From positions 7,750,001 through 7,814,000 of the forward strand of contig OU015567.1 of NCBI GenBank assembly GCA_907165135.1: 64,000 nt of DNA, in the 5' to 3' direction. A program made the translations under genes and the position numbers. The DNA is from Oikopleura dioica (lineage: Eukaryota > Animalia > Chordata). The notes beneath the pieces are model-generated. The model ran no database searches. It was given only the letters and a program-made list of their open reading frames with translations, and was not told the origin of the DNA. Every line of letters starts with the position of its first letter. Position 1 is the stretch's first letter. Positions 38,364 through 61,774 of the stretch are shown here, piece by piece.

Positions 38364-41300
38364 GTCAAGCCCCTTAAATTAAATAATCAAGGAACGGGGC
38401 TGAAACGGCCCGAAGGGCCGTCAAGCCCTTAAATTAAATAATCAAGGAACGGGGCTGAAACGGCCCGAAGGGCCGTCAAGCCCCTTAAATTAAATAATCA
38501 AGGAACGGGGCTGAAACGGCCCGAAGGGCCGTCAAGCCCCTTAAATTAAATAATCAAGGAACGGGGCTGAAACGGCCCGAAGGGCCGTCAAGCCCTTAAA
38601 TTAAATAATCAAGGAACGGGGCTGAAACGGCCCGAAGGGCCGTCAAGCCCTTAAATTAAATAATCAAGGAACGGGGCTGAAACGGCCCGAAGGGCCGTCA
38701 AGCCCTTAAATTAAATAATCAAGGAACGGGGCTGAAACGGCCCGAAGGGCCGTCAAGCCCCTTAAATTAAATAATCAAGGAACGGGGCTGAAACGGCCCG
38801 AAGGGCCGTCAAGCCCTTAAATTAAATAATCAAGGAACGGGGCTGAAACGGCCCGAAGGGCCGTCAAGCCCTTAAATTAAATAATCAAGGAACGGGGCTG
38901 AAACGGCCCGAAGGGCCGTCAAGCCCCTTAAATTAAATAATCAAGGAACGGGGCTGAAACGGCCCGAAGGGCCGTCAAGCCCCTTAAATTAAATAATCAA
39001 GGAACGGGGCTGAAACGGCCCGAAGGGCCGTCAAGCCCCTTAAATTAAATAATCAAGGAACGGGGCTGAAACGGCCCGAAGGGCCGTCAAGCCCCTTAAA
39101 TTAAATAATCAAGGAACGGGGCTGAAACGGCCCGAAGGGCCGTCAAGCCCCTTAAATTAAATAATCAAGGAACGGGGCTGAAACGGCCCGAAGGGCCGTC
39201 AAGCCCCTTAAATTAAATAATCAAGGAACGGGGCTGAAACGGCCCGAAGGGCCGTCAAGCCCCTTAAATTAAATAATCAAGGAACGGGGCTGAAACGGCC
39301 CGAAGGGCCGTCAAGCCCTTAAATTAAATAATCAAGGAACGGGGCTGAAACGGCCCGAAGGGCCGTCAAGCCCTTAAATTAAATAATCAAGGAACGGGGC
39401 TGAAACGGCCCGAAGGGCCGTCAAGCCCCTTAAATTAAATAATCAAGGAACGGGGCTGAAACGGCCCGAAGGGCCGTCAAGCCCCTTAAATTAAATAATC
39501 AAGGAACGGGGCTGAAACGGCCCGAAGGGCCGTCAAGCCCCTTAAATTAAATAATCAAGGAACGGGGCTGAAACGGCCCGAAGGGCCGTCAAGCCCTTAA
39601 ATTAAATAATCAAGGAACGGGGCTGAAACGGCCCGAAGGGCCGTCAAGCCCCTTAAATTAAATAATCAAGGAACGGGGCTGAAACGGCCCGAAGGGCCGT
39701 CAAGCCCTTAAATTAAATAATCAAGGAACGGGGCTGAAACGGCCCGAAGGGCCGTCAAGCCCTTAAATTAAATAATCAAGGAACGGGGCTGAAACGGCCC
39801 GAAGGGCCGTCAAGCCCCTTAAATTAAATAATCAAGGAACGGGGCTGAAACGGCCCGAAGGGCCGTCAAGCCCCTTAAATTAAATAATCAAGGAACGGGG
39901 CTGAAACGGCCCGAAGGGCCGTCAAGCCCTTAAATTAAATAATCAAGGAACGGGGCTGAAACGGCCCGAAGGGCCGTCAAGCCCTTAAATTAAATAATCA
40001 AGGAACGGGGCTGAAACGGCCCGAAGGGCCGTCAAGCCCTTAAATTAAATAATCAAGGAACGGGGCTGAAACGGCCCGAAGGGCCGTCAAGCCCCTTAAA
40101 TTAAATAATCAAGGAACGGGGCTGAAACGGCCCGAAGGGCCGTCAAGCCCTTAAATTAAATAATCAAGGAACGGGGCTGAAACGGCCCGAAGGGCCGTCA
40201 AGCCCTTAAATTAAATAATCAAGGAACGGGGCTGAAACGGCCCGAAGGGCCGTCAAGCCCTTAAATTAAATAATCAAGGAACGGGGCTGAAACGGCCCGA
40301 AGGGCCGTCAAGCCCTTAAATTAAATAATCAAGGAACGGGGCTGAAACGGCCCGAAGGGCCGTCAAGCCCTTAAATTAAATAATCAAGGAACGGGGCTGA
40401 AACGGCCCGAAGGGCCGTCAAGCCCCTTAAATTAAATAATCAAGGAACGGGGCTGAAACGGCCCGAAGGGCCGTCAAGCCCCTTCAATTAAATAATCAAG
40501 GAACGGGGCTGAAACGGCCCGAAGGGCCGTCAAGCCCCTTAAATTAAATAATCAAGGAACGGGGCTGAAACGGCCCGAAGGGCCGTCAAGCCCCTTAAAT
40601 TAAATAATCAAGGAACGGGGCTGAAACGGCCCGAAGGGCCGTCAAGCCCCTTAAATTAAATAATCAAGGAACGGGGCTGAAACGGCCCGAAGGGCCGTCA
40701 AGCCCCTTAAATTAAATAATCAAGGAACGGGGCTGAAACGGCCCGAAGGGCCGTCAAGCCCCTTAAATTAAATAATCAAGGAACGGGGCTGAAACGGCCC
40801 GAAGGGCCGTCAAGCCCCTTAAATTAAATAATCAAGGAACGGGGCTGAAACGGCCCGAAGGGCCGTCAAGCCCCTTAAATTAAATAATCAAGGAACGGGG
40901 CTGAAACGGCCCGAAGGGCCGTCAAGCCCCTTAAATTAAATAATCAAGGAACGGGGCTGAAACGGCCCGAAGGGCCGTCAAGCCCTTAAATTAAATAATC
41001 AAGGAACGGGGCTGAAACGGCCCGAAGGGCCGTCAAGCCCTTAAATTAAATAATCAAGGAACGGGGCTGAAACGGCCCGAAGGGCCGTCAAGCCCCTTAA
41101 ATTAAATAATCAAGGAACGGGGCTGAAACGGCCCGAAGGGCCGTCAAGCCCTTAAATTAAATAATCAAGGAACGGGGCTGAAACGGCCCGAAGGGCCGTC
41201 AAGCCCTTAAATTAAATAATCAAGGAACGGGGCTGAAACGGCCCGAAGGGCCGTCAAGCCCCTTAAATTAAATAATCAAGGAACGGGGCTGAAACGGCCC

Positions 41301-41391
41301 GAAGGGCCGTCAAGCCCCTTAAATTAAATAATCAAGGAACGGGGCTGAAACGGCCCGAAGGGCCGTCAAGCCCCTTAAATTAAATAATCAA
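38364..41391. repeat. Homogeneous tandem array: 54 x 55/56-bp hairpin unit plus a 27-bp partial
   Basis: Unit GTCAAGCCC(C)TTAAATTAAATAATCAAGGAACGGGGCTGAAACGGCCCGAAGGGCC. 3001 bp between the first and last unit starts equals 54 units. Variation seen: C3/C4 run length and one A>C at 40485. No variable spacers, so not CRISPR. Confidence 0.98.
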
Positions 41392-41414
41392 TTTTTGTCA
41401 TCGAAATTGAGTTT

Positions 41415-41720
41415 TTGAGGGTTGAAATAGCTACTTAACAGTGTTTATAGTCACAAATTCAATCATTAGAAAAAACCACTTTTTCGAATTTTGATGCTCT
41501 CTAGTGACCCCGAGATGAATTTTTTTGAATTTTTGACCTCAGAATGGACTTTTAGAGGGTTGAAATAATAGCTAAACAATGTTTTCAGTCACAAATACTT
41601 TTATTTGAAAAACTCACTTTGACGAACTTTCATGACCTCTTATGACCCCAAGATGAACTTTTTTCGAACTTTTGACTTCGGAATTGAACTTTTGGGTACT
41701 TATTTACTATAGTCACAAAG
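41415..41720. repeat. Degenerate ~137-bp tandem repeat (about 2.3 copies)
   Basis: Recurring GAGGGTTGAAATA...AGTCACAAA...GACCCC.AGATGAA blocks. Confidence 0.7.
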
Positions 41721-44053
41721 TTTCGTTCAAAAAGGACTAGAATATCGACCACTCATTTTTTTCAGCGGGTACCTATTTCCAGACCCTTCCAAGACACTTG
41801 TCATAAGCATATCGTATGTGTATGATTATATTTAGTACCGTTTTCTAGGTTTGCTAGTGGACAATAATGATGGATCGCAACTTTTCTAGCTTCTCAAAGA
41901 GTTAATCTTAAAATCCAGTGTTGAAGGTAACGCAAATATATCGCTTCAGTTCAAAAAACTTTTTCTCGATGACGAAAAATGGGCGTTGCCAGTGTGGAAA
42001 CTTCCTAACAGAGAATGCAAATATGTACAGTCCGAGCAAATAACCATCACCTCACGCGGACACGCCTATTTTTCTGGTTGATATTTGAACTTAGCATTTC
42101 TATTTCGTTACATAATTTCGCTCAATGGACTCTATTGTATGTACACCCAGTTACAGTAGAAGTGCTTTCTACTCAGCCTATTCGCCAAAGAATAACTTTC
42201 CGTAATCATATGCTAGAGCTCAAGTCGAATAGATTTTGAAATACAAGCAAAATCCTTATCATATGGTCTGATTTCTATTTTCTTCTCTTTTCCAGATAAA
42301 TTTTCATTTTTGGTTATGTTTTTCTGACTCAATGCAGAGCGCATAATGTCCCGCGGTGCTGCCCACGTGTCTTTCGAACCCTTATCACTTCCAGCCATTC
42401 TTTCTCGGCTTCCATTGAGGCGTTTCGGTTCAATTTGACGGTCTCCAATCAGCGAGACTTTTTACTGTATTTGTACGCAAACGCGTTTCGGGTTTCTTCA
42501 GAGTTTCGCCAGAATTAACCTCCAGTCAAACGGCTCCCTGCGGCGTTCTGAATGATAAGACGAGGGCGCTTCGGATGGAACAGACACTGGCGCTGGAGGT
42601 CCGTCGCTACGTCGCATAAACCACCAGCTCCGCTCTGCTGCCCTGGTGGAGAAAAAATCATGATATAGTAACACCATATCATTCAGCGATCACTCAAAGA
42701 CCACAGCAGACAACCCGGAACGAGCTTTTTTTTACTGAAGTTCAGCGGTTTTTTCTAAATTACACGCGAATTTATCAGAGATACGAAGACATTTATCACC
42801 AAGGTAAGATTCTCTTGATCGTTTAATGAATAAAGATACCCCAAAAATAACTAAACCATATTTTATGGTTGATATATCACAAACTACGACAGCGCCTGAT
42901 GTCGCAAAAGAGTCGTTCATGTATATTTTTTGGAAATAAAAGGCTGTTCGGCCGGTTAAAATTTCATATACGCTCCAAAAAACAACATCACTAATATGAT
43001 ATCAGCAATTGCTAAGTCACAAGGTAATTGATGTTTAGAAATGATCATTTTTAACTGCTGGGGACCAAGTGGTACTGCACCAATAGTCACTATTGGGCGG
43101 AAGGTCTAGTATCAAAATAAGTCGGCATCTATTTCACTCAGCTCAGCAAGGTTTAAAATTGTAGACTAAGAAATGACAACCCTTCTAGGATAGCAGGGCA
43201 GTGAGGATGGGGATGATGCCTGTCCGGTAATTTGACCCAAAGTCCGACATTTGCAGACACTTTGTTGATAACCCGTGATGTTTTTTCTATGCCCCCGGTC
43301 GTTTATGTTTTTTTGGAAAAGGAAGTACTGAGAATATTTTGAAAGCAGAAGCCGCAAGCTAACCTCAATCTGCGAGGGTGTTAAAGTTAAGAGGAACCTT
43401 AGCACGCGGCAAAATGACCGGTGCATGATGCTGCCGCGTGTAGGCTGAAGGTGCGCAGAAGCTGGCTGCTTGACCGTGGCAGCACTTCTCCCTGAAAACG
43501 CGCAGCGCAACACTAACTCGCTCGAATAGAGTGACAGGGTTAGCTCTACTAGCCTCAAGCAGGCCCCCGCAGACGCAAACGCACAGCTCCATGGTGTGGT
43601 GTTTTTTTGGCAAAACTTTCGAAATCCATACTTCAGGCCAGAAATTCATACTTTTAGACGTAAAATCTTTAAGGTCGTCTTTCTTTTTGAGAATAACTTA
43701 CCTCAGATTTATATGATCAACCGACTTGGATTTGCAATTTTTCTTTCATCGGAGTAAAACAAGATATTCAATCGAAAGCTGTGTTTTTAGTAACAATGTT
43801 CGCGCTAAGTAATGATTATGGGTTGCGGATGCTGTCTATTTTTGAGTACTGAGCAATCGGAAATAGACAGAACTGTGAAAAAATAGACAGCGTTTAACCT
43901 TATCCTATTTATCCTTCAAATACGAGGGTTGTTTTTGGTACTTTGAAACACCGCAAACAAGCAGTTATGTATCAAATTTACTTATTTATTAGAAATAATG
44001 CCAAGTAGATATTAATTAAATAGAATATAGTAATTTTTTATTGTATAAAAAGG

Positions 44054-46240: not shown

Positions 46241-49200
46241 TCAGTCAAGTTGGCAGAGCATGGCTACGCCTCGGCCGATCCAATGCTCTTCTGGTTGATC
46301 AGTAGGAACTGTTAGCATAATGACGAAGTTGGTTGAGTGACCAGTTGTAGAGAGGGTTCCACGTCTTGCAGATGTTTTGTAAACAGGACAATTGTACTGA
46401 GGACGAACTGGGAGCTCGTCTTTCTTGCACGGCTTCAGCCATATTTTAGGCATCGTGTCAAACAAGATCTAAATTGAAATTGAAGACGTTCATGTCTCTC
46501 TTTATTCAAACCTTTGGGTGCGATTCAGCGAGAAGTTTCTTTTCTCTGTCCCATCTTGCACCTTCCAAAAAGAAGCCATATATAAACGCGCCATCATCTG
46601 GTGCTGTGTAGTCCTTATCCTCCATGATTTCGTAGTCGAAAGTTAGCAAGTCAATAGGGATCTTGTATTTTCTAGCGTAGTTTTGTTGAACGCCAGTCAG
46701 AAACGCCTGCGTGAAGAAGAATCCAGAACACCAGAATTGTTGAGGAGTACCGTTGTCATACCAGTCCTAAAGATTCAAATAATGAGCAAAAGACTTAAAT
46801 AGCCTATTCAACAATTGATCATATATCGAAAATAATTACCAGGTTCAAGGCTTACCTTAAGAAAATTAAGTCGATCAAGCAAATCGTTGAAATATCCTCC
46901 AAGAGTTTTGAGCGAAGGATAAGACTTTTTAGTCCATAAAGTCGGGATTTGACCACTAAGTACTTCGCGGAACATTGTTTCCAGGTCCGAGTTCATCACA
47001 ACAAGACCCTAGAATAAAATAATAAACGCTGAAATAGACAAATTAGGGCATTCGTTGTTCAATTATTACATGCGAAAACAAGCTTTTAATAACTACCTTG
47101 ATCGCCTTTTGAATTTCGATAAGCGAATTGCGCACAACTTTCGTGAGCGCATTGAATCGCACCATCTCTTGAACAAGAACTGTATTCATCGATTCTTCGT
47201 ATCTCGTCGGGAACTTGCGCATCGTCGCTTCAATGTCAAAGTCATCTGGTAGTTTGTTGAGCATGTCTTTGGTAACTTCAAGCACGGAATCGTCATCTGA
47301 TGCTCCAGCATTTCCACCAGCTGCTCGTGACTAAAGCAAAAGAATTCATAAATCGCAACGAAAATACAATGTATACCATTGTGAGAAGCACGGAACCAAG
47401 GAGAGAGTTCGTCTCATTTTGATCTTTCGTGATGTCAGCATTCGGATGCATTCCGAAGACTTCTGGCTTCACCAACAGCGGCAAATTTCGACAAAACTCC
47501 AGATAACTTTCCCTCTAGTTTAACGAAATGTTTTTATCTGGATTTCGATGAAAAAACATCTTTTAATTCCGAATAAGCCAACAATTTATGTCTCAGATAA
47601 GTCTGCAGCTGAAAGCTTGCACTCGTTCAAGTCTATCAGTCTGAAAGCCAGTCTGCTCAAGCAATAGAAACTTTAGTTTAAACCAGTCCCTTTCATGATC
47701 TCCATCTGGGGGCACGGCAAAAAGACCGTCATTATCAAAAGCATAACCGGGAGTGTCAACTGTATCTCTTCTGTAAACACGTGAAAGCAGTGCCAATAGA
47801 CATCTTCTATCTTTATCGTCAGTGACTCTACCACCATAATTACATTCTCCAGTCAAGTAATTGATTGCATCTAATGGGATGAAATCGTACTGATTCAGGA
47901 AAATCTGCAACTGGCGTACAGAAATACGCAGGTCAGTCTCGTTGAATTCATAAGGTATGTTCCAACCAATCGGGCCGAATTTACGACGCTCTTGGACAAG
48001 ACCATGGAAAAAGCACAGGCCAAAGAGGAGCTTCTTAAAATGTACGTCTTGTTGGCATCCCGTGAACCACTCGGGATCAGAGATAGGATCGGAAAGATAT
48101 GACCTGATCATGTTGGCCTTCATTCCTGCTGGAGCTTCGTTCGTCATCTTGACACCATTCTGCAAGACTGAAACGGGAAAGTTCGGACTCGGATAGGAAG
48201 TCAACCATAATCTGAAGTTGGGATGAGTGGTTTCAGGATTCAAATCGTAGCAAATTTTCTCAAGAGTCGTCATCCACGAAGTAGCCAAATGACAGTTTTG
48301 AAGAACAACCCATTTTCCTTCCTCAATACCCTTGTTGATCATTTTTATTGCGATCGGCCCTTGACCCTGGCCAAGCGAAAGGGATGAAATTTTCGAACCC
48401 ATGTCTTCGTCGTCAGCAAATTTTAACAACGCAGCATTGGGATCAGATCCAGGAGAAAGAATAAAGATCAGAGGTGCGCAGCTATGCGAGTCGGCGTATG
48501 AGCCTGGGAGATCAAATGGAGGTGGCTCAATAAACCTCTGACCAATTTTTTCAGTGATGAATGCTTGAAGAGCAGGTATGAGTTTGTCTGGCCGTAAACA
48601 TCGAAGAATGAGAAGCCGCTTGAAAAGTGATAAAGATCCGTATTTTCCGGGAGGTACAGCATCTTGCGGCTTTTAACGGTTTACTGCACATGAGAAGATA
48701 TTTTATGAATAAGAAATATGAGTATTTTTAATTTAATGGGTCTCCAATTGACTAATCGGCAGCTGACATTTCAAAAATAGAGTGTGTAATCATTATTCAA
48801 ATTGTCGAGTTGAGAATCTCATATTTCAGATGTAGTAAACTGTCCTTGTTATCATCATAAATTACCTTCCATTGAGCACTCAACTCTTTAAAATCGCTTA
48901 TTATCCCCTTGAAATCGTCTCCAACATCATTTAGTCGGCAGATCTCATCCCAAGATTTCGTCGGTATCCAGTCGACCGGTTTTTCATTGGGATTTTCTAG
49001 GCCAACACCGCCGGTTAGAAGGAACCTGAAGTCCTCCATCGACACTTCGTTTCTGTGCATAAGCAGATTTGTGCAGAGAATGAACGAGAACAACAGCTTG
49101 TCTTTCTCAAAGAGCGATCTACAAACATTACAGTACAGACTGTACGTAAAGTAGTCCTGCAAATTGCTCAATCGTGTTGTGATGTCATCTGATTTTTCCG

Positions 49201-52200
49201 ACTTTTCGATTCCCTTTTCAAACAGGCTCACAAACCAAGTCAGTGAGTATTGGTACATGGGATCTATATTCGCCAAATCAGAAATCGTAAAGAAGAGAAT
49301 TGTGGAATGGATGGCGATAGGGGTGTATCCTTTTCTTGCCTCGTCAATTTTACGTTCAGTTACTTCGGCGATTGCCTGTTTTTCAGAGATTTCATTCGCA
49401 AGAACTTTCGAGCTGGAGAGGATCTTGATCGCCGTTTCATCTTCCAAAATATTTCCTTCGGAACTAGAGAGCACTTCCAAAATCTTGTCTTCAATTTCCT
49501 TGAGCTGTCGCTTGTTTTCAGCTCCTTGAAGAATCAGTTGGTTCTTTTCCTCTTCAAGGTCGGGTCTTTCCAAGGCAACAACGATTCCTAGAAGTTGATC
49601 TTGAAGGCCTTCTTTCGTGATCATAAAGTTGAGAAGTGTAACTTTGACGGATGTTTCTGGAAGATAATGTGGATTTCTGAGCTTGGTCGTGATATAAAAT
49701 CGGAAATCGTTCGAATATTCTAGCGTCGAGTCGCCAAGGCGGATGCACAAAGCGCCTCCTTGTTTAAACGTTTGCTTCAGCAACAGTGGCTCCAATATCG
49801 GATCAAGCTCTTCGCCAATGTCTTCTAAAAGAACAGGATTTCCAAACTGAATGCAGTTTTCAAGCGTCCTCACAAAATCTGTGTCAGTTAGTTTTATCAC
49901 GTGGAGATTGTTTGACTTCTCCATATTTTTGATCCACTTGTTTGCTTGACCCTGAGGATCAATCAGAAGTGGCCAGCGAGTAGAATTCGCGATGATGATG
50001 CCATTGTCGATCGAAAAGGAGTCTGAAGGCAGTCCAGCGATATTCCAAGCTCTTATTTTGACTGGATCGCCAAGGACGCCAGAAAGAGCGAATTTTTCAG
50101 AACAGGGTATTTTCTCAGCAATGCAAAGCTCTCGCCATTCTTTGATAGCGTCTTCTCTGTATACCGAGGTAAAAGCACCGAGATATGCAACAACTCCTGC
50201 TGAAATCAAAACGTCGCCTGTGAGGTTTTCGTACTGGATCCCAAGATTATGCGCCATTTCTGTCCATCTGTCTTTCTCTCCACCAAGTGATTCGATTAGT
50301 TGTTTGGCACGGACGAGCTTTTTGGAACAAAGATCGACTTGATTTTCCAAATCGCCTTTTTTCCTCTTGTTATTGATAAGCGTTTCTTGTAGAACCGCCA
50401 TTTTATCTTGGACCTCTTTGAGCTGGTCTTGCTTGGCCTTCAAAGCTTTCATCACAACTGCTAGCTCTCCTTCTGCTTCTTTGAGTTTTTCCTTCTTTGG
50501 TGCTACCACTTTCGCGACTTTGTCGTACGACTCAATTGCTCGGACCCATTTACAAATGCCCGCACATGCTGACGAAGCTTGAACGACCTTTTCTGGATGG
50601 AAATCTGGATGAGTGATGTATTTTGTTCGAATTTGCTTGATGTAAGCTGCTGGAATGTTGTCCTTGTCAAACTCAATAAGCGACTGAAGGAACTTCATAT
50701 CTCCAAGCATTCTCTTCGCCGGTCCCCAGTAGTCCTGAATCATTTGACCAGAGCCAGACGGATCTGGCTTCTTCTCTGGCTTGATACCTTTGAGCACACA
50801 AACGGCTTCAAGGATCAATTTGACGACAGCAGGAGGACTACCGAATTGCTTTACGACACCGATATCCTTTGGTGTCAGAGTGTTGAGGGCTGCCATGGCA
50901 CTTTCCAGAATAGGTATAGCTTCGGCAAGATCCGCGTCACATTCATCCTTGAATAGGTTAAATTGTGTCATAGAATTTATACGATTCTTCTTCTTTTTCT
51001 TTGATCTAATTATTATCGATGATTCTTTGTATATGCGACAAATGTAGGACATGGAAGAATATAAGATACGTAATAAAAAGTCTCTATGCCTCGATGATTT
51101 TTCAAAAGAGATTTTTAACCCATTCCTTAATCGCTTTAGCTGCCATTGCTTGCTCATTCGCAACGGCTTCATCTGCCCGCACAACTTTCTCCACTTTAGC
51201 GACTTCCACGCTTTCCTTTTCGACTTTGATCATAATTTTGTCAACTTCCTTCGACGACTCTACGAGCTGCGGTTGAAGAGCTTCGAGCTCGATTTGCATA
51301 GCTCCAACGGCTTCTGCTGCGGCGCCCAGTTTCTCCAATCCAACAATGTATCGATTCTTCATTTTGCTGATTTCCGTGCGTCTTTTGTCGAGCAAATTTT
51401 TATACGTAGAAATCAAGACAAGGTATGAGGTTGGTGTGACGTAGTTATGACGGCCAGCTTCATCTTTGAAACGGTCAGTGAGCCCACGTGACGATTGATG
51501 AAAGTTTTTACAAAGACGGACACAAGACGCTTTGTGCGCGTCACTCATCTCTACTTCCTCCATGAATTTCTGCGCAACAGAAGCGAGTGCATCGTCAGGC
51601 CAGCTTTGGAACCAATCAATCGTGCAACAATTAACGAGCGACGGGAACATTCTTTGATGAGATTTGACAACTATATTCTTGAGCAAGAATACAATAATTA
51701 TCTTTGAGAACATACAAATTGTATAATAAAATAAATTAAATCTCGTTCCTAAGACGCTCGACGAGCGCATCTCCGATCGGAGACATAGCCAGTACAATAT
51801 GAAGCTGGTCTTTGACTCTCTCAATAAACATGTTGAACAAGGCGAGCGGAGTTCCATCCGTTTGTAGCGCCTTATCACGCTGTTTGTCCAGTTGACGCAT
51901 TTTGTTAATGATTTCTTGTTTTTCATCAGCTGCGAATATGTTTGGAACTTCTCCAGCATTCAGCAAATTGTTAATATCTTCGAGGAAGGCTTCCTCCTTG
52001 ATTTGCGTATCAGTGAACAAGAAAACACCTTGTCAAAAGTTATTTATCGCTAATTCCAAATTAATTATCTTGCTTTATTTTTAACCAAAGAAGATGCTGT
52101 TCTTTTTGTTATAAATAAAAACTCTTTCCTTGTCGATCCGTAGCAGTCGCTTTCATCAAGATAACTTTCAGATCTTCTCGCCATTCTGTTAACCCGTAGC

Positions 52201-55200
52201 CTTTTCCGATTTCCACCTAGACGAAGCTCATAATAATATTTACTTTTTGATTATAATTTGCTTAATTTTCAAAAGAATAAATTCTTTTTCGAGTTAAAAT
52301 TTAACATGCTACTTGGTAAGCGTAAAATCTTGAGGTAGAAGTTGAGCCTTTCCTGGAAAAGCTCACAGTCCGCCATGAAAGCCGCCAGTCTAGTCAACGA
52401 CTGTCTGCCTGATCCACCAACGCCGACGAGCAGAGCATGGCCTCTTGGTTGCTTAAGAAGTCGCGAAATACGTGATATGTGCTCGATGGCAAAGCGGAAC
52501 AACACCAGGTTCATCGGTTTTTTATCAATTAAGTTGAATTCAGCAAGTTGCTCAGTGACGGTTTCTTTGAGCTCTTCAACATCTGGCACCTGCAGATAAT
52601 ATCCATTATCGTTTTTCGGGACAAAGTCGCAGAACATGAGAGAGCGCAGATCATCCTGCGTGATTGTTCCTTTATTCCCTTTTTGTTCAGATAAGAAATT
52701 GCTTTGCAAATTTTAATTCCACTTTGGCTTTTTTTATCCGTTCCTTGGTCATATTCATTGAAAAGGGATGCGAAGGAAGTTTTCAGATGTTCTTCTGTCA
52801 CTTTCTCGATCTTTTCGAATAGCCAGGCTTGATCTACGTCGTCTACAAGACGATCATAGTATACTCTTAGCACTTCGTGTACCCAAAGTTGCTTGATAGA
52901 ATCTGTTGTTGGGGCGCTAATCGGGTTTGAGAGGCAAACACCCTGAATTACTCTTGCGAAGTCGCGAAGGTTGAAAAGATAGTGCGATTTTTTCGGCGTT
53001 GGTAGAAGATTTTTAATCGTCGAGTGAAAGATTTCGAGGGTTCCGGAGATGATTGGTTTGATCAAATCAGAATACGTAGACTCGAACTGGTTCTTGATGT
53101 TGAAATGCCAGTCTAACATTCGACTGAAGATCGTGGACATGCTCGCATCGTCGAACTCGTTGATTGTGATGGTATTGAAATGACGTAAAAATCTGGCTGT
53201 GACTGGATTTCTTCCTCCACCAGCTGGGCCCATTGCACCCATGAACTGAATATCCACGAGATCAATCTGGTCAGAGTTGTGTTTATGTATTTTAAAATAT
53301 CTAAAATTATCTACTAGCTAAGTCTATTGACAACCAGCCTTGGTGCAATCTTTCAAGTCATACCAATTCCAGTGATCAAGGGCCTGGCGAACGAGCTCAA
53401 TCGGAGGCTGAGCTCCATATGTTCCGCGCATAGGCATATTTACGTCATCAATGAAGATAATTGTCTTCTTGCCCATCGGTGGACCGAAAACACCTTTGCG
53501 ACGTTTGTCCAGTTTGCTCATGATAATGTCCTGAGTTTGCTTCGATGTTGTTTGAGCGGAAAAATTGATGACTAGTGGGCGATATTTGTCCTATGCGGAG
53601 TACAGATGTGGATTAAAATGATTGATAGAATAATTTCGGTTAGATACGGTTAGATTTCGGCCATACGGTTGATATGATAATATCATAATTATAAAGATTA
53701 AAATGCACGAGACAATAATTTCGGTGTCAATATAATGGCGCGATGTCCCAATCAATTAATATTCATTATGGAGCATTATCAGCTGCTTGGCTGGCCACAA
53801 ATTGTACTCCGTCCCTGATCAAGATCTTTAACCAAATAATTGTTAACATAAACGGATTTTCCCGTTCCAGTTGGACCGACAAACAGTGAAGGCATTTTGT
53901 TTTGAGTAAGAATGTCCATGAGATATGTGTATCGAACTGTGTCTTGCGTTGGAACGACGATTTGATTGAAGTCAAGGCCAGCTGGAATTTTAGGACTATT
54001 TCTGAGCTCTTCGGTCCATCTTTCCCAACGACCAATTCCTTCTCGGATAAAGTTCCACGCATAAATGCTTTCAGTCTTTGGAATCGGAACGTAAAGAGAA
54101 CGTGTCGGAGATTCGACTTTTGTGATCATGTTGAATTTGCTCTTTGTTAATTCTGAGAGAGGGCCGTCGATCATTTCGCGAATGAGCATATCGAACTTTT
54201 CTCGACCTTCGCTGTTAATTCCTCCTCCAAGAGACCATGTGCACGAGAACAGGAATATTCCCTCAAGCCAGCTGTAAACATCTCGTTCGTGCATATCAGC
54301 TACTATCTTGGGGTCAGAGAGCTCTGTGAACTGACACTGCATCAATCTCATGCAAGAAACCGCCATATTCGTTTGACTTACTGGAGAGAGATGACGGACA
54401 CCCGACTTTCTATTGAATTCAAGCAAGGCTGGAAGATATCTATCCATCAATGCATTGAGGAATGTCTTCATTTCGGTCGAAAAGCTTTCCGGAAGCGTGT
54501 TCAGCCACGAAGCTGCCATCGGCTGCCAACCCAACATGTGAGGCTCCATGTAAATCATACCACAGCGAGAGACAGTAGCTGGCGATGCCACCTCTAAATC
54601 TTCCGGTTCGAAGATCAGATTCGTCGTGCTTGCCAGTTGGATGATTTCTCCCGACATCAGACAAAGCTTTTTGTTGTCGTCAAGTACTGTATTCATGTTC
54701 TCAATCCAAACCGCATCGACAGGTCCATCAAACATGAGCCATTTTCGATTTGGGTTTGTTGAAACTGCAAACTGACGATAAGACACGGCGAGGATACCAT
54801 CGGACCACTCGTGTGACACTGGATCGAACTGTCCGTACAGTTGTCCCATCGTGATCGATTTTGGGTTGATAACTGTAATTTCAACTTGATTTTCGAAATT
54901 ATGCCGTTCGTTGATGATTTTTAATGCTTTTGCCAACACCCTGTATGCTGACGTTTTTCCACCAAACGGATCTCCAACGATCATAAAACCGTGTCGGACG
55001 ATCATCATTTCATAAATTTGCAGAATTTTGTCAAGGAAAAATGACGGTAACTGAAGATTCATCTCGGTGCAAACTTCTTCGATTGCCTCTTCAAACATTT
55101 TGTAATCTGGCGGTGGAAGTTCTATGCCAGGGAATAAATCAGTCGTAATACCCTTGAAGAGAGGCAGATCTTGAGCCAAGAACTTCGGCAAGTTGACATC

Positions 55201-58200
55201 AATAATCGACCTGAGCATAAGAATATCTTCAACGTCATCTGGGTATTTGAGTTTTAGATTGCCTGCCGCTGTGAGGACAGACTTGACAGCTCTCATACCA
55301 TAATCATAGTGGCATTGCGAAGAGAGCTGTTCGGAACAGAGTCGATAAGTCGCCACAATTTTAACTGACAGCGGTCGAGCTCTGACGAATCCAAATGAGT
55401 AAAGTGAAATTTCAGAAATGAGTGCATAATCTGGTACCATCATAGCAACAGATCGGAAAAGCGCTTTCAAGTTATCTGGAAGCTCTGATCGACCAGCATA
55501 GCCGGGGTTCATGGTAATGAAGACTGCGCAAGTTGGATCCAACTTAATGTCTGTTCCTTCGAAGAGAATTCTGCTTGATCCGGCTCCGATTCCTCGTTGA
55601 ATGGTCATAATCTGCTGTGCGACGACTTTTATTAGTTCAAAGAACTTCAAAGTTCGTTCGTTAACATCGGTTTCGGGTTGCCGAAATGGTGCTGAAAATT
55701 AGCCCCTGCAATATGTGAATAATTGATATAAATAGATATCACATCTGATGATAACGAAATAGATACATGGTAATTTTATATGATTTGCTATGTTAGTTCA
55801 AAAACTTCAAAGTTGTTAATCTTTATACCAGCTGGCCGATATTCTGGTTGTTAAACAGAATAATGGTGCTAAAGTAAGCGCTGATGTGGTATGAAGTTCT
55901 CACTGGGTAAATTTGGAACGATTCAGTTAAATGATCCCAAAATGATTCTTGTTCAAATAACCATTTTAGGCGCAAAATGCAACAGTTGAAAAAACAGATG
56001 ATAATAAATTATTAATAATCAATGAACTGGCCTGAGAGTACTTCAAGATCGATTCGATTGAACTCGTCAAAGCAACTCCACGCACCACAAGAAGCTAGTC
56101 CTTTGAAGAACTTTCCAAGCGCAAGGTAGTCAAGACCATCTGAGCAATTGAATACAACGCACTGTTTCGCCACTGCTTTGGCCAAATCTTTAGTTGTTTC
56201 AGTTTTACCAGTACCAGCTGGTCCCTCTGGCGCTCCACCGAGATGAAGATTAAGCGCTCCAAATAATGTCCTGTAGCATCGATCGGTGAGTGGTGTGATG
56301 ACGAGACGTCCAGAGTTTCCGAGATACTCGTAGCCGTAGTTCAAGTATGCATTGATCATTCTAGTGACGAAGTGGTAGTCGCCGTTTCTGACCTCATCCG
56401 GTTCCCAGTAATATCGAAGCTGGGCCAGCCAGTCAAAATCATTCGGCTGATCAATCTTCTTGTTGATCAACACTTGCAGGACGTCACGAGCGTGAACATC
56501 GAGTACAACGAGAGCTCCAAGAGTAACTCGATTTTGCTTGCTCAGCTTGCCCCGGACAAGTGCGACAATCTCATTAATTTCCCCGTTGCATTGTTCCAAA
56601 TATTTTTCCATAGCCTCGTGACCTTCGACGATAGAATTGGTAACATTATCAGTCCAGTATTTTTGAGTCACGGCAAGAACAGCTTGTCCAGGGTATTCCC
56701 TGACCCACTGGCCTCTTGGCCGAGTCGGATAAGTTTCCAACCCGACGCCGCAGACCTTCCAAACTGAGTCAACCATGATCTCTTCTAATTCCAGAAGCCA
56801 CTTTTCAACCTGACCTCTTGCCTTCGAAGTTGATATTTCTTGCGAAAGCTTAACTTCTTCGCCTTCAGATGACAAAATGTGGGTAATGTCGAGAATGTCA
56901 GTGAAATTCAACTTCGCAACACCCTCGAAGCACTTTTTCAAATGCGGCTGAACACGAGTTGGATCTTTGGTTTCGGAGAGAATTTCCAAAAGCTCATCGT
57001 TTGACAAGAAGAAAAATCGAGGAAAGTAAAGTCGTTTCTTTTCGAGATACTCATTGAGTCCTTTCAAGATCATTTCGAGCAGTTGGTTGGAGCCAATCAG
57101 TCGCTCCAGTAGCTTGTCAATTTTAATAACAGCTAGAACATGCTGATCTTGAAGGGCGACTTTGATGATTTCTCGCCAGGTTTTATCAACTTTTGTAAAA
57201 CGACGTCCTTCTTCCGGCATTTGCGCCATGATATCGGGCGAGGAAAAGATTGGTTCAAGGTAAAGCCAGGTTGCTTGTACCTTTAGCCACTCGTCAAGAA
57301 CTTCTTGAGTGAGCAACAATTTGCTCTCCCAGTCCTTAATCTCTTCCTCGAACGGCTTTATAAAAGGACTTCCCCGCATCGTCTGAGTTTTGACAATGTG
57401 ATCATCAAGAAGCATTTGAATATCATCGACGCCAGAGAGGATAGATGTTCCAGTCTCTCGATAAGGCAGCAAGGTAAAGCAAACATCGTCCCATTCGATG
57501 ATCATCTTTTCCATTGCTTTTTCGAGAGAATACTCTTTCGAAGCAGATTCCGAAACGGCATCAAATTGTTCGAGATATTTTCCAAGATCCATTTTGAGAT
57601 ACTGTTCGACATTGCTGTTATATGCTTTTCAAGGAAATATTTGATGTGTTATTATAAATATTAAGAAAATGACCGTGGTGGACTACCAGGTCATCAACAA
57701 GCTGTCATGATTTATTTGGAGATCGTATTTGACATATTGCACCTCAAAAATTATATTACCAATATTGGCAATAAACTTGAAGCACGATCCTTGATTCGTC
57801 GGGAGCAAAATTGTCAACACCAACTATTTCTGCCATTTTAGTCCAGTGACGTTCGCGCAGACCAGGATTGCAAATTGTCGAAATGATCGGTAGATTTTCT
57901 TTGAATTCATCAACGATAGATTTTGTCGCCGTTGCGATGGATTTTGCTTTTGGATTGTCACCAAGTTCTTTTTCCAGTTTATAAAGAGCTCTCCAGGTTC
58001 CGCTCACCTCCTTAATTATTTACTTAAAGAAAGGGCGGATTATTATTTATGTACCTGCTCAATGTCATCTGGGTTCATTTTGGTCATATCTCCGTGCATC
58101 CACTTATCATGATTCGCCACAAATGTAGCGCAAGTCTCATACAGCCTTCCATATGGAGCCAAATTCTGAGACACCTCAGTTCTCAGTGGATACGCTGAGA

Positions 58201-61200
58201 CTTCCCATCCATACGCTTCTTCTTCTAAATTGAACTGGTCAATGGTCTCGAGAGCCTTATCGAGCTTCTGCTGTAGTTTTTGAGCTTTCTGATGGTATTT
58301 GTCAACTTGGTTCGGATCCGCAAAGCCTTTGAACTCTTCCAGTTGTCGTTGGTAGGATTCGAGGTCTTCTTGAAATCGTGCACGCCTGTTTTTCAGCTCA
58401 TCCTGATACACATTCGTCTTGTCAGCGATGATGCTTTCGTGATCGACGAAGACCTTTTCAATCCTGCTTGGCCAGGTGAAAACATCAGAATTGAGCCTAA
58501 CGTCGCGAGGGGCCATTTGCGTCTCTCCACAAAGAAAGAGAAGGCGATCTTTTGTATGACGAAGATCTTTTTCGATCTGCGCCATTTTGCCTCCTGGAGC
58601 TCTTATAGCTTTGATTTCTTCTGAAAGAGCCATGAGGTCCTCGGTATCTTTCGGCGTAGAAAGTGCTTTTCTTGAGATTCCATCGAAATCAGAACAGAGT
58701 GCTTCAGTCAATTTGACGTGATCATCTTTCATTCGATCGACAAACTTGGCAATTATTTCTTCGACGCGCTTGGACAGACTTCTGATGAGCTCAGAACTGT
58801 GAAGCTCGAACATGCCGAACTGAATTATTCGGGGCTCTTCGTAAAGAATTTGGTTCAAAGCTCCGCGATAGTTCTTTATTTGCTTTTGGTACTCGCGGAA
58901 TGTGTGCTCTTCAGATAGAAACTTGTCCACTTTCTCGTTTGCTTCGCAGGAGATGAGCGGCTTGTACTTCTTTAAAACTTAATTTTCTTGTTTAAAAATA
59001 GTCGAATTTATAGATCTCAATTAATCTTAATGGGTCATTTTTAATGGCATAATGACTCATTTATAATATGCTCATTATTTTTTAAAATCGAAGACAGTAT
59101 ATCGATTTAGATTACTGATAGATGACACTGTTTTGAAACAGCGCCATCATTAAAAAACTATAAATACTGATCTTTGATTTCGTTTTCATAGACAACCTCG
59201 AAAAAGAAAAACAACAAGGATGAATATATTTTTGGGACTTTTTAGCTTGTTCGGTGCTTCAGCTGCTTTGAGGATGATGAAACGCAGCGGGTAAGGAAAA
59301 TAGGCGAAATTATAAAATGAAAAAAATTTAAGGCCAAGTGAAAGTGCTATTGACGATGCATCTGATGTCAATTTTAATTTGATGTTCGTGTGCGATATTT
59401 TATTGAGCTAAGAGGCCAATGCACTTTGAATGAATCATTCAAATAAGGGCACTACGAGGCTATAATTCGAGCTGCCCTAACCCTAACCCAAGCGGTCTTA
59501 CAGTGTAAGACTTACACCATGTTCAAAATCATATCGCACACGCCAAATCTGATTGAGCTTTTGAAATTGATGGAAAACGATCCGGAACGATTTGCTGATG
59601 ATGAAGGGCCAGCTCGAGGATGGGGTGGACAACGAGTTCTCGAGTTTTAATTTCTATTTTCTTCTTTGTTTTCAAAAAATCCTTGCCTGCGACATATCTT
59701 TAGGAAAAACCTAAACTATTTTATTTTCATTTCTCGCAAAATAAAATCAAGATATTTTACAGTTTTCTTCCTTGATTTCAACTGTATAACACTTACGGTA
59801 TGCCTTTTATTATGCGCATGCTTAATCACATGTCTACGAGTTACAGACATTTTATCGAACTTGAAACCTTAACTAATGCAATTATAATGATAATGAGCAA
59901 TATAAGAATGCATTAGCAGGCTCAGTGACCGTAAACTGACACGTGACTGGCATGAAAAGCAGAAGCAAAATACGTTTTTAGCGGATATTAATCATTAAAA
60001 ATTCTGAGGTAAATGGCGAATCATTTACCTTTTTCTAAATGCTCTTGTGGCTTTTTAGAAGCCTCATTGATGACGCTGTCGATCATGACCTTGGCTCCTT
60101 TGACAATATTCGGAAGAATGATCGGTCGTAGATTTCCCGTGTCACCAGCGCGGCTTGTGAAAGGTTTCTCCGAGTACAACTTCGTCTCGACTCTTGGGAC
60201 CTGGTTCACTCCTGATGCGATGACGTCGGTAATGCTTCGCATGTACTGGTGGAAATCGGACATTTCAGGCTCGAATTTCACCTGTTCTCCGTCGATGACA
60301 AGCCGAATAACGAATGAAAACTAAAGTTCCTTTTTTAGGATGAGAAAATACTGGTTACTTACGGTTGAATCTGGCTCCTGTGAATGCTTGATAAGAGTTT
60401 TGTAGTCATAGATGGAGTCAAGTGCGAGATTTTGAAGCTGGCGAGTAAGCAAAGTCGCGGTACTCTCAAAAAAGCCACACAGCTGTTTTGACTTCATATT
60501 CTGCAGCGAGTCGTTCTTTTTGTTGTACGCGTAGAAGACATTTTGAACTTCAGGAAACCAATTTCGAAGGAGCTTGTCTTTAGTTCCGTCAATGTGGCTC
60601 ATTGCTTGCGAGTGAAAGTTTTCTAGTTCGATTGCTTCAGTCATTGCTTTGAAATCGCCCGTTTGGATCAATCTTAGGCTCTGGAAGCCTGTTTCCCAAA
60701 GTTTGAGTAGATCTCCATGAATGGGTCTTGTAAATGGAAACAGGTAGTTTTTGCATGCGTCAGTTGCTGCAGCAAAATTTGCCTCTGTTTCGGGAGTTTT
60801 TCTACGACATTCGATTCGATGAGCAGTGAGAAAATCATTTTTGTTCTTCTTTTTTCTTCGTCTTCATCGTTTATGATAGTGACCTTATTTAGATTGAATA
60901 TAATCTGTATAATTATTTTTCGATCAAAAAGCTCTTTGAAGTAATGCTATATCAAGCCGGTTTCTCACGTATCAAAGCCATATCGGTTTAAAGCGGGTTA
61001 CAAAAATTAAAGTAAATCCAATAATCAGTCCCCTCGGTGACATTCAGACAATCTGTCTGACCCAGAAGTTTCGAGTCCTGATTATATAATGACCAGGGAA
61101 TAAAAGACAATTAACTTAAATTTATGGAAGAATACTGAATATTCAACTTTCCTGTCGATTATCCTTCAGGACGAAGTCAACGATTGCCTTCTTCACACTC

Positions 61201-61774
61201 AGCAAATAATCTTCTCGAATAGTTTCGTTCAAGTCTCGGAGTTCTTTTTCATATTGCTTATATTTTAGAATATCGGGCACATGGTTGAAGATCTCGTCGA
61301 GCCAGGATTCTTCTAGTGGGGCGACGTTGGAAGTATCAAATCCGTGCTGAATGTAGTAATAGTATCGTAAAATATCGATCTTTGTCTTTCCATCAGCTTC
61401 TGTTTTAGAGGGTCCTCAAGTGATATGCTAATTTGAACAAGGCCTGAATCTGACTATTTACTGAATTCGAAATTTCTCGATTTTAACCCTCTCCTGTCGA
61501 GCCCGCTTCGGCTAATGCTTGACAAAGCTCCTCTCGAAAAGTCTTTCTGTCCCTCTTTTTTGGTTCCTTGGTCCTTTTCGTCTTCTTTTGCGGCTCCATT
61601 TGCTCCAGAGTTGAAAGAGTGCTCTTTTCTGACTCTGGCGGGAAGAATAAAAGTGGATCGGAAGATGTCCATTTGGAGCTTTATTTTTGTTTATGAGTTT
61701 TTTCTGGTTGGAACTTACGTGGAAGTTTTGGAGAAGAGTCCGCTACTGGGGCCCCTTCTCTTCTTATCCGGCAT
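46241..61774 (-). CDS. DNAH7: Axonemal inner-arm dynein heavy chain 7 (about 22 exons)
   Basis: [11 protein letters not shown]; P-loops [33 protein letters not shown]; stalk/MTBD; C-terminal STTGHSTNF...[14 protein letters not shown], resembling DNAH7 as recalled. Start codon approximate. Confidence 0.9.

Follow-up and report, generated by a model that had tools for sequence, protein, structure and literature searches.

A run of eleven non-GT introns with predicted stem-closed ends in a DNAH7-type dynein gene of Oikopleura dioica

Introduction

Non-GT introns in Oikopleura are already known. They make up 11–12% of introns genome-wide in O. dioica (PMC8008620), are three-fold enriched among new introns of Oikopleura and have been attributed to a permissive major spliceosome (PMC8008620, PMC4122922), while for O. 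dioica GA-AG introns an upstream AG was described and the mechanism was left unknown (PMC7072748). The introns described here, found in a 64-kb stretch of the O. dioica genome (the window), are similar to these G*-AG introns (GA-AG, GC-AG and GG-AG; Denoeud et al., 2010, via PMC4122922; PMC8008620; PMC7072748) in a donor of G plus non-T, an AG acceptor and an exonic AG, in enrichment among lineage-specific introns and in a background of very short GT-AG introns. Not described in these three accounts (PMC4122922, PMC8008620, PMC7072748) are the terminal helix in a fixed register, the co-evolving arms, the drift of base +2 at orthologous introns and the run of such introns within one gene that mark this locus.

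In another larvacean, Fritillaria, the inverted repeats of introner transposons themselves serve as non-canonical splice sites (bioRxiv 10.1101/2025.08.15.670264; PMC11282704). The Fritillaria borealis introns of introner/MITE origin (Henriet et al., 2019, via PMC11282704 and bioRxiv 10.1101/2025.08.15.670264) share with the present ones the larvacean host, the inverted repeats at intron ends and the occurrence of non-GT borders at lineage-specific positions with GT-AG at shared positions; they are removed by the U2 spliceosome in an organism with no U12 system, and here a spliceosome is inferred. The F. borealis borders, AG-AC or AG-AT, are part of the repeats themselves, whereas the present introns have G[ACG]-AG borders and repeats that start about 4 nt inside the donor and stop about 8 nt before the acceptor; neither a multi-copy family nor a clear target-site duplication was found here, in contrast to that system.

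Euglenid nonconventional introns (PMC11282704) also have non-canonical borders, a helix (+4..+6 with −8..−6) that juxtaposes the ends, junction repeats resembling target-site duplications and a suspected MITE origin. However, their borders are variable, and their excision is seemingly non-spliceosomal and yields circles (PMC11282704), whereas the G1, G5 and AG acceptor kept here point to the spliceosome. A terminal helix of Oikopleura non-GT introns was not found in the searchable literature, in which Denoeud 2010 and Henriet 2019 are covered through later papers.

Intron-internal pairing that probably unites reactive sites and is kept by compensatory change is known from yeast too. Goguel and Rosbash in 1993 and Libri et al. 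in 1995 reportedly described yeast helices that shorten long introns, the donor region being paired with the branch-point region. Those helices reportedly have their 3′ arm upstream of the branch point and belong to GT-AG introns, whereas here the 3′ arm lies within 8–16 nt of the acceptor of non-GT introns.

The dynein gene and its intron run

The located part of the gene, at 46241..61415 on the minus strand, encodes a DNAH7-type axonemal inner-arm dynein heavy chain. Residues 134–3992 of the 3994-aa homologue P0006 map by tblastn to 61409-46247, the stop codon is TGA at 46243-46241 (minus strand), and P0006 is continuous over every junction of the spliced model. Exon E2 aligns end to end with residues 1393–1995 of the DNAH7 chain 9fqr_Xw, which among solved structures is its best match, scoring 905 bits where DNAH3 reaches 721 and DNAH12 697. 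Introns were modelled below 58975, the N-terminal third of the gene lying above this point. Sister lineages (L001-L005), the close relative L007 and three more distant relatives whose genes are compact (L006, L008 and L009) served for comparison.

The initial annotation listed ten introns without a GT donor, and this observation is confirmed: all ten were located on the minus strand at their listed coordinates, with donors AG|GA (seven), AG|GC (two) and AG|GG (one), AG acceptors throughout and measured lengths of 65–406 nt in the window. The exonic AG|G context of every donor was noted correctly as well; for GA-AG introns of O. dioica it had been reported before (PMC7072748). The ten are consecutive and lie in the motor-domain part of the gene, but the run is longer than was described, since an eleventh non-GT intron (47689-47513) stands directly next to it. 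Splicing restores the conserved dynein frame in eleven exon pieces (47690..58010, minus strand), each with one stop-free frame and with phases that chain: E0 58010-57790, E1 57614-56032, E2 55625-53815, E3 53590-53339, E4 53266-52744, E5 52678-52353, E6 52216-52129, E7 52028-51749, E8 51651-51126, E9 50947-48845 and E10 48669-47690. E0-E10 are 91–100% identical to sister lineages in amino acids at about 80% nucleotide identity, which points to purifying selection, and the exon structure was found again in five independent metagenome and Logan contigs.

In the modelled part, GT-AG introns flank the run on both sides as had been stated, one upstream and four downstream (all minus strand). The upstream one (58011..58054, 44 nt) is specific to the window's lineage, its site being uninterrupted in L002, L003 and L004 and contiguous by tblastn in L008 and L009, and it has no terminal helix above background. 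Downstream are d1 (47331..47376, 46 nt), at a position common to L008 and approximately to L006; d2 (47009..47096, 88 nt), common to L008 and absent in L006; d3 (46767..46855, 89 nt), with its acceptor at 46767 set by frame check; and d4 (46469..46511, 43 nt). The positions common to L008 mark d1 and d2 as older GT-AG introns. With 5 GT and 11 non-GT introns, a single-block arrangement has a chance probability of 6/4368 = 0.0014, and 11 non-GT introns of 16, set against the published genome rate of 11–12% (PMC8008620), one of about 3e-7.

Nearby GT donors offer no usable GT-AG alternative for any of the eleven introns. Within ±60 nt no in-frame, stop-free GT-AG pair exists for 9 of the 11, those for introns 3 and 6 were rejected because they would remove 12–30 conserved residues, and intron 11 has GT in no register. 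The junction peptides of introns 2, 3, 4, 6, 7 and 8 are single gapless blocks in uninterrupted coding DNA of L006 and L008; those of introns 9 and 10 match uninterrupted coding DNA of L006, where the L008 alignments are partial, and that of intron 5, in a variable stretch, matches with a 2-aa gap. RNA supports one junction, the tenth, which is exact in sister-lineage reads 88–95% like the window: loose read ends (7 reads in X4) join 48672 to 48848 with a 3-nt AAG ambiguity and no register with GT. A search for an RNA run from the window's own lineage found none.

The introns individually

All eleven lie on the minus strand. Intron 1 (57615..57789; GA-AG, 175 nt, phase 2) occupies a position common to L002, L003 and L004, all three with a GC donor. 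Its arms are 57785-57780 / 57627-57622 (GTGCTT/AAGCAT), and in the MFE fold 10 terminal pairs shut the intron off. Intron 2 (55626..56031; GC-AG, 406 nt, phase 1; arms 56028-56023 / 55639-55634, AGTTCA/TGAACT) is common to L001-L005, with donor GG in L001 and L002 and GT in L003-L005, and absent in L006, L008 and L009. Intron 3 (53591..53814; GG-AG, 224 nt, phase 0) is confined to the window's own lineage and L007, where it measures 143 nt and exon nucleotide identity to the window is 91%; L001-L006 and L008 lack it and have the exons fused in frame. Its arms (53811-53803 / 53604-53596) read CGGAGTACA/TGTACTCCG in the window and CGGAGTTT/AAACTTCG in L007; while the exons differ by just 9%, the arms show two double compensatory changes. 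Intron 4 (53267..53338; GC-AG, 72 nt, phase 0) is GC-AG also in L001-L005 and L007 and absent in L006 and L008; RNAalifold predicts the terminal helix alone, with UA<->CG covariation, the window arms being 53335-53330 / 53280-53275.

Intron 5 (52679..52743; GA-AG, 65 nt, phase 1) is GA-AG in L001 (85 nt) and L003 (81 nt), and its arms, CGGATAA/TTATCTG in the window (52740-52734 / 52694-52688), are AGGATTAAAAT/GTTTTAATCCT in L001. It is absent from L006, and L008 carries a GT-AG intron close by, in a variable stretch, that may or may not coincide with it in position. Intron 6 (52217..52352; GA-AG, 136 nt, phase 0; arms 52349-52343 / 52230-52224, AGGCUCA/UGAGCUU with one G-U pair) is absent from all sister lineages sampled, the site being uninterrupted (..FQ VEIG..) in L001-L004, L006 and L008, as in the spliced peptide. 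Intron 7 (52029..52128; GA-AG, 100 nt, phase 1), GA-AG also in L001-L004 and absent in L006 and L008, has the 7-nt direct repeat GACAAGG on both borders and an MFE fold with 15 terminal pairs from +3/−7 (arms 52126-52120 / 52041-52035). Intron 8 (51652..51748; GA-AG, 97 nt, phase 2) is GA-AG in L001 and L003 and absent in L006 and L008; the arms read GAGATTT/AAATCTC in the window (51744-51738 / 51665-51659), GACAATTG/CAGTTGTC in L001 and TGGGACA/TGTCCCA in L003, differing in sequence with pairing kept.

Intron 9 (50948..51125; GA-AG, 178 nt, phase 0), into which the genomic ORF P0386 runs on (GAACG..), is GA-AG in L001 and absent in L006, and L008 has its own intron about 10 codons upstream. 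It carries a 12-bp terminal helix (51125-51114 / 50962-50951) with AAG flanking each side and a fold z of −2.5. Intron 10 (48670..48844; GA-AG, 175 nt, phase 0) is GA-AG in L001, the arms being GTTTACT/AGTAAAC in the window (48840-48834 / 48685-48679) and GTTTAT/ATAAAC in L001. Intron 11 (47513..47689; GG-AG, 177 nt, phase 2; arms 47686-47678 / 47523-47515, CTGGTTTAA/TTAAACTAG) has the 5-nt direct repeat AGGGA on both borders. At its donor site L001 appears, as read by eye, to have a GA-AG intron whose acceptor makes the product 2 aa shorter; L008 lacks the intron, and L006 is uninterrupted with a 2-aa gap.

The terminal helix

The non-GT class combines an exonic AG, G at +1, non-T at +2 and G at +5 (in 10 of 11) with an AG acceptor that is preceded by an A-rich tail, not by a pyrimidine tract. 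A predicted terminal helix of 6–12 bp joins about +4/+5 to about −8/−10, and in the MFE fold it closes 10 of the 11 introns. Matched 5′ and 3′ ends form on average 7.7 bp (6.5 Watson-Crick), against 5.4 (4.3) for mismatched partners, and none of 20,000 permutations reached the observed stem length. GT-AG controls of the same gene and L008, a small set (n = 10) of shorter introns, gave 5.5 (4.0), that is, background. In orthologous introns the helix occupies the same register with different sequence. The dedicated recognition mode suggested initially thus gains indirect support at the sequence level, from a helix in near-fixed register, its co-evolving arms and GT-AG neighbours without it.

These introns probably arose as hairpin or inverted-repeat insertions, and a permissive U2 spliceosome, aided by the helix, probably splices them. 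Each would go back to a short introner- or MITE-like element, bearing inverted repeats close to its ends, that inserted at an AG|G site, and the permissive U2-type spliceosome of the larvacean would remove it through the AG acceptor and a donor, AG|GnAnG, that is otherwise near consensus. The helix would draw both splice sites together, and this proximity may offset the +2 mismatch and the intron length. A helix that aids splicing would explain its compensatory upkeep while +2 is free to take any of the four bases, as seen between orthologues with A/C at intron 1 and C/G/T at intron 2. Since the helix covers +5 and +6, also needed for U1 and U6 pairing, its effect on splicing could be a hindrance as well as an aid.

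It is rather unlikely that the helices are functionless, decaying remains of such inverted repeats or hairpin insertions, the spliceosome tolerating any +2 given AG|G..G+5 and an AG acceptor. The donors are indeed near consensus except at +2, a permissive spliceosome has been proposed (PMC4122922), the helix is weak in L001 intron 9 (4 bp only) and in window intron 4 (one mismatch), and whole-intron fold energies are just modestly lower than those of shuffled sequences (z = −0.3 to −2.5). Neutral decay, however, predicts equal native and cross-lineage chimeric stems, whereas swapping 3′ ends among lineages within an intron lowered summed stem length from 197 to 178.9 ± 5.4 (P = 0.0004), or, counting Watson-Crick pairs only, from 172 to 150.7 (P = 0.0003). 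Moreover, the helix persists in register though the interiors of orthologous introns no longer align between lineages, and double compensatory changes occur in introns 3, 4, 5 and 10. The arms thus co-evolve, kept by compensatory changes in sister lineages.

Age and origin of the introns

Eight of the ten introns first listed, all except 3 and 6, stand at identical sites in sister lineages despite about 80% exon DNA identity and are therefore old within the clade. Among the larvaceans compared, introns 1-4 and 6-10 are absent from the more distant relatives where each contig reaches (2-10 from L006, 1-4 and 6-10 from L008, 1 and 2 from L009), and for intron 5, also absent from L006, the nearby L008 intron is a possible counterpart. 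Gain of these introns within the clade is thus supported, but not the single burst of gain that had been suggested: introns shared by sister lineages and those confined to the window's lineage (3 and 6, the former also in L007) were gained at different times. Across the 64-kb window and about 100 kb of related loci, none of the eleven introns has a second copy, which leaves a mobile family unsupported there. Direct repeats of 2–7 nt at the borders represent only putative target-site duplications, since their AG (with the following G where present) is also splice-site consensus.

Could the introns instead be ancient, their GT having eroded under a permissive spliceosome, and have been lost in the relatives, perhaps when spliced cDNA recombined with the gene? 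Oikopleura often loses introns (PMC4122922), the position comparison covers larvaceans alone, and intron 2 has GT in L003-L005, an indication that GT and non-GT interconvert. Yet L006, L008 and L009, which lack these introns, have their own at other positions, almost all GT-AG; the introns shared with L008 are the GT-AG introns d1 and d2; and erosion leaves the terminal helices, the greater length and the missing pyrimidine tract unexplained. Ancient origin is thus improbable, and gain of hairpin-like insertions within the clade remains the preferred reading.

Route of removal and significance

Excision by a route other than the normal spliceosome, like that put forward for the nonconventional introns of euglenids, would fit the missing pyrimidine tract and a helix register strikingly like the euglenid +4..+6 with −8..−6 pairing (PMC11282704). 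It is very doubtful here, since G+1, G+5, the exonic AG and the terminal AG are almost invariant, as recognition by U1, U6 and U2AF predicts, euglenid nonconventional introns are without fixed borders, and Fritillaria non-canonical introns need the U2 spliceosome (bioRxiv 10.1101/2025.08.15.670264). An error of the gene model (nearby GT donors in use, a pseudogene or an assembly artefact) is hardly credible, having nothing in its favour beyond the RNA being from another strain than the window's, and having against it the missing workable GT-AG alternatives, the junction peptides matching uninterrupted orthologous coding DNA, the conserved exon structure in five independent contigs and junction 10 in RNA reads. 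With splicing by a permissive U2 spliceosome as the likeliest route, the stem-closed ends would provide a testable clue to how these non-GT introns are spliced.

A run of non-GT introns in the DNAH7 gene

The gene can be assigned to DNAH7 (inner-arm axonemal dynein heavy chain) by its best match over paralogues and by its motor domain order. Exon E2 (55623-53815, minus strand), one of the exons E0-E10 that lie between the non-GT introns, aligns end to end with residues 1393-1995 of DNAH7 chain 9fqr_Xw and matches DNAH7 best, with 905 bits vs 721 for DNAH3 and 697 for DNAH12, and on orthologous contigs the domains follow in the order DHC_N2, AAA_6, AAA_5, AAA_7, AAA_8, MT, AAA_9, Dynein_heavy, AAA_lid_11 and Dynein_C. 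Exons were searched singly, and junction peptides of 24-25 residues were compared locally. A homologue of 3994 aa (P0006) maps without break from 61409 to 46247, crossing every junction; matches in the representative protein search reached at most 57% identity over comparable length, and P0006 serves as a ruler, not as an orthologue. In the N-terminal third of the gene (above 58975) there are weak matches from P0006 only, and here two dynein tail exons lie about 1 kb apart, with no long open frame between them (58976-60020, minus strand); this gap is likely an intron, unusually long for this genome.

The ten introns proposed by the initial annotation, all on the minus strand (introns 1-10 at 57789-57615, 56031-55626, 53814-53591, 53338-53267, 52743-52679, 52352-52217, 52128-52029, 51748-51652, 51125-50948 and 48844-48670), were recovered with donors AG/GA in seven cases, AG/GC in two and AG/GG in one, with AG at every acceptor and with lengths of 65-406 nt; their G+C content is 24-36%. 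The 11 exon pieces have one stop-free frame each, and the phases chain as 2, 1, 0, 0, 1, 0, 1, 2, 0, 0. The run is unbroken, as had been claimed, but it does not stop at ten, since directly after exon E10 there is an eleventh non-GT intron (intron 11, 47689-47513, minus strand), a GG-AG intron of 177 nt with an AG acceptor, a 5-nt repeat AGGGA at both borders, a 9-bp terminal helix and a GT donor in no register. On both sides of the run the modelled introns are GT-AG, in agreement with the same annotation: within the modelled part (below 58975) a 44-nt GT-AG intron lies just upstream of the run (58054-58011, minus strand), and four others (d1-d4, of 46, 88, 89 and 43 nt) lie downstream on the same strand, between the run and the stop codon that ends the gene (46243-46241). 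The published proportion of non-GT introns in Oikopleura is 11-12% (PMC8008620), and 11 of 16 has a probability of about 3e-7 at that rate, while the probability of one contiguous block among 5 GT and 11 non-GT introns is 6/4368. The use of nearby GT donors instead, considered from the outset as the alternative, is contradicted by the sequence around the borders, because for 9 of the 11 introns no in-frame, stop-free GT-AG pair occurs within 60 nt, and GT-AG alternatives at introns 3 and 6 would delete 12-30 conserved residues.

All eleven introns start with G followed by a base other than T and end with AG, as the G*-AG introns of Oikopleura do, and the orthologous introns in L001-L005 and L007 (contigs with related dynein loci) are built likewise, with the exception of GT at intron 2 in L003-L005. 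In GA-AG introns of O. dioica an exonic AG before the donor and an A after GA are conserved (PMC7072748). The AG/G context, recognized initially for the ten, holds for 11 of 11; A is found at +3 in 7/11 and G at +5 in 10/11, the introns end in A-rich tails (AAG in 6/11), and a pyrimidine tract is absent.

Two further features of the window may be mentioned. Coding exon E1 contains a sub-threshold match to Rfam RMST_9, a conserved region of a human lncRNA (56788-56980, minus strand; 54 bits vs a gathering score of 65), which probably reflects dynein-like sequence in the family seed and not an RNA gene here; known RNA genes were also searched for in the introns, and none was found. The region 38001-42000 has a G+C content of 0.46-0.49 and an AT skew of +0.23 to +0.31, compared with about 0.41 and about 0 elsewhere.

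Intron positions in relatives

Relatives were found by word searches with single exons, and the contigs were then fetched. The closest of them, L007, shares about 91% exon nucleotide and 99% amino acid identity with the window; L001/L002 and L003/L004/L005 constitute two sister lineages (about 80% nucleotide and 91-100% amino acid identity), L006 is at about 80% amino acid identity, and L008 and L009 are more distant, with compact genes and introns of 45-60 nt. The compactness of the window gene, its GT-AG introns of 43-89 nt and the existence of sister lineages at about 80% nucleotide identity are in keeping with Oikopleura dioica as the host. The sister lineages have introns 1, 2, 4, 5, 7, 8, 9 and 10 at exactly the same sites, again mostly without GT, and base +2 drifts across orthologous introns: the sister-lineage donor is GC instead of GA at intron 1, GG (L001/L002) or GT (L003-L005) at intron 2, GC at intron 4, and GA at introns 5, 7, 8, 9 and 10. 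The sites of introns 3 and 6 are empty in all sister lineages, and intron 3 occurs in L007. Further away, L006 is without introns 2-10, L008 without 1-4 and 6-10, and L009, within the extent of its contig, without 1 and 2. The outgroups have their own introns elsewhere, almost all of them GT-AG (one intron of L006 may be GC-AG), and the positions of the GT-AG introns d1 and d2 are common to the window and L008. L002-L004 do not have the GT-AG intron at 58054-58011, and L008 and L009 are unbroken there, so that this short ordinary intron, too, was either gained in the lineage of the window or retained by it alone.

The uninterrupted coding DNA of L006 and L008 forms single gapless blocks with the window junction peptides at introns 2, 3, 4, 6, 7 and 8, and that of L006 matches gaplessly at introns 9 and 10; the junctions of introns 2, 3, 4 and 6-10 are thus supported independently of RNA. 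An apparent extra intron of L001 in exon E9 (L001:6464-6562) was rejected, as it is a run of N in a metagenome scaffold, that is, an assembly gap. Within a GT-donor intron of about 280 nt in the L006 dynein gene there is a tRNA-Asn(GTT) gene (L006:4092-4166, plus strand).

RNA evidence

A search for sequencing runs gave no RNA run that contains the window. When four RNA runs with the same species label were aligned to 48400-54399, 35 reads were placed, all of them only 88-95% alike to the window and hence from another lineage. No joint within this region reached the listing threshold, and the sole informative reads are those with loose ends at junction 10. Here 7 reads of run X4 break off at 48672 and carry on with sequence found from 48848 onward, the continuation matching L001 at 28/30 bases and the window at 26/30. 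This indicates that a further sister lineage has E9 spliced to E10 in its mRNA where the model predicts it; the junction is ambiguous by three bases (AAG), and GT appears in no possible register. Precise removal from mRNA is suggested by reads at junction 10 only, in that sister lineage, and at the gaplessly matching junctions it is predicted from orthologous coding DNA. Reads at 51973-52023 were assigned to a paralogous dynein (..GKKMIFLFTD..). Word searches for transcript-derived proteins with E9, E2 and E8 gave only ORFs of genomic contigs, and the genomic ORF P0386 runs on into intron 9. The coding sequence of the same-label runs differs by 5-12% from the window, mostly at synonymous sites (48600-48700 and 51970-52025), which implies that the species label spans several deeply diverged lineages.

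A helix joining the intron ends

The longest contiguous pairing between the first and the last 22 nt was determined for each of the eleven introns. The mean helix formed by an intron's own ends is 7.7 bp with G-U allowed and 6.5 bp with Watson-Crick pairs only, vs 5.4 and 4.3 when 5′ ends are combined with the 3′ ends of other introns, and none of 20,000 permutations of intron ends reaches the observed sum. The helix keeps its register: in 8/11 introns the first base of the 5′ arm is +4 or +5, with a range of +1 to +5 over all eleven, and the last base of the 3′ arm lies between -3 and -10. Regarded as terminal inverted repeats the arms are 6-12 bp long and in most introns subterminal (+4/-8), being truly terminal in intron 9 only. 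In this gene the helix is specific to the non-GT class; ten GT-AG controls (five each from this gene and L008, one of the ten with a wrong 3′ end) gave 5.5 and 4.0 bp, which is background. The terminal helix closes 10/11 introns in MFE folds, and in introns 3 and 9 it is present in both the MFE and the centroid structure (z = -1.4 and -2.5, respectively); fold significance was assessed with mononucleotide shuffles and, for introns 3 and 9, with the folding tool's own shuffles. Intron 2 contains two direct copies of AACTTTGAAGTTnTTTGAACTAA (55793-55814 and 55632-55654, minus strand), the second of which supplies the 3′ arm of its helix.

The two arms co-evolve. Orthologous introns have the helix in the same register despite differing sequence, as in intron 8, where the arms are GAGATTT/AAATCTC in the window, GACAATTG/CAGTTGTC in L001 and TGGGACA/TGTCCCA in L003, in intron 5 (CGGATAA/TTATCTG in the window, AGGATTAAAAT/GTTTTAATCCT in L001) and in intron 10 (GTTTACT/AGTAAAC in the window, GTTTAT/ATAAAC in L001). 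One mismatch in the window arms of intron 4 is C:G in L001 and T:A in L003 and L007 (RNAalifold), and between the window and L007, at only 9% exon divergence, intron 3 has changed A:T to T:A, C:G to T:A and G:C to G:U. If the arms were merely neutrally decaying repeats, a 5′ arm should pair equally well with the 3′ arm of another lineage. However, when 3′ ends were exchanged among lineages within each intron and stem lengths were summed, own-lineage arms paired better than swapped ones (observed 197 vs swapped 178.9 ± 5.4, P = 0.0004; Watson-Crick only, 172 vs 150.7, P = 0.0003). The intron interiors are no longer alignable between lineages.

Origin of the introns

The empty sites in relatives bear out the idea that the introns were gained, but not that they came in one burst, for the gain was step-wise and introns 3 and 6 postdate the others. 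Presence and absence at intact orthologous sites, by which introners and MITEs are recognized, is seen when the sister lineages are compared at introns 3 and 6 and, as far as their contigs extend, when distant relatives are compared at introns 1-4 and 6-10. The pattern comprises shared positions that are GT-AG, lineage-specific positions that are mostly non-GT with paired ends, and the two younger insertions. A like pattern is reported for Fritillaria, whose non-canonical splice sites are formed by the inverted repeats of introner transposons (PMC11282704; bioRxiv 10.1101/2025.08.15.670264), and the locus also agrees with the three-fold excess of non-canonical borders in new introns of Oikopleura (PMC4122922). 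A search of the 64-kb window and of 10 related loci found no further copy of any of these introns, which leaves a mobile family as a hypothesis. The direct repeats of 2-7 nt at the borders (AG to GACAAGG) are candidate target-site duplications that are not distinguishable from the AG/G splice consensus, which by itself yields the common AG(G) core; intron 9, with its truly terminal repeat, has AAG on either flank.

Possible mechanism and significance

The U2 spliceosome would be the machinery that removes these introns, since G1 and G5 persist, together with the exonic and terminal AG, and since larvaceans are devoid of the U12 system (bioRxiv 10.1101/2025.08.15.670264). The helix might help by drawing the two splice sites together; a difficulty for such a role is that it spans +5 and +6, positions also read by U1 and U6. 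The nonconventional introns of euglenids, in which +4..+6 pairs with -8..-6 and which seem to be excised as circles without the spliceosome (PMC11282704), have their helix in about the same register. They are, however, without fixed borders, whereas G1 and the terminal AG are invariant in the window introns, so the latter do not belong to that class and only the mechanistic resemblance stands. We tentatively propose, as a reading that has somewhat less than an even chance of being correct, that the spliceosomal introns of Oikopleura include a second class assisted by structure, in which a short helix peculiar to each intron and set at fixed distances from the two splice sites partly replaces the T at +2. 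Base +2 could then be any base, the arms would co-evolve, and hairpin-bearing insertions would become introns at once; such insertions would still be occurring (introns 3 and 6) and would accumulate where long stretches of coding sequence are poor in introns, as in the dynein motor domain.

To explain how Oikopleura manages without GT in about one of nine introns, a permissive spliceosome, a variant U1 and m6A on U1 have been put forward (PMC4122922, PMC7072748, PMC13326754). The dynein gene offers a compact natural test set: it carries eleven non-GT introns, has orthologues from three or more sister lineages for comparison, and includes two cases of presence vs absence in which the empty site is intact, and the adjacent GT-AG introns act as internal controls. 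Together with the drifting +2, the co-evolving helix makes a direct prediction for minigene mutagenesis, and the locus records step-wise intron gain in a chordate, with a pattern that matches Fritillaria.
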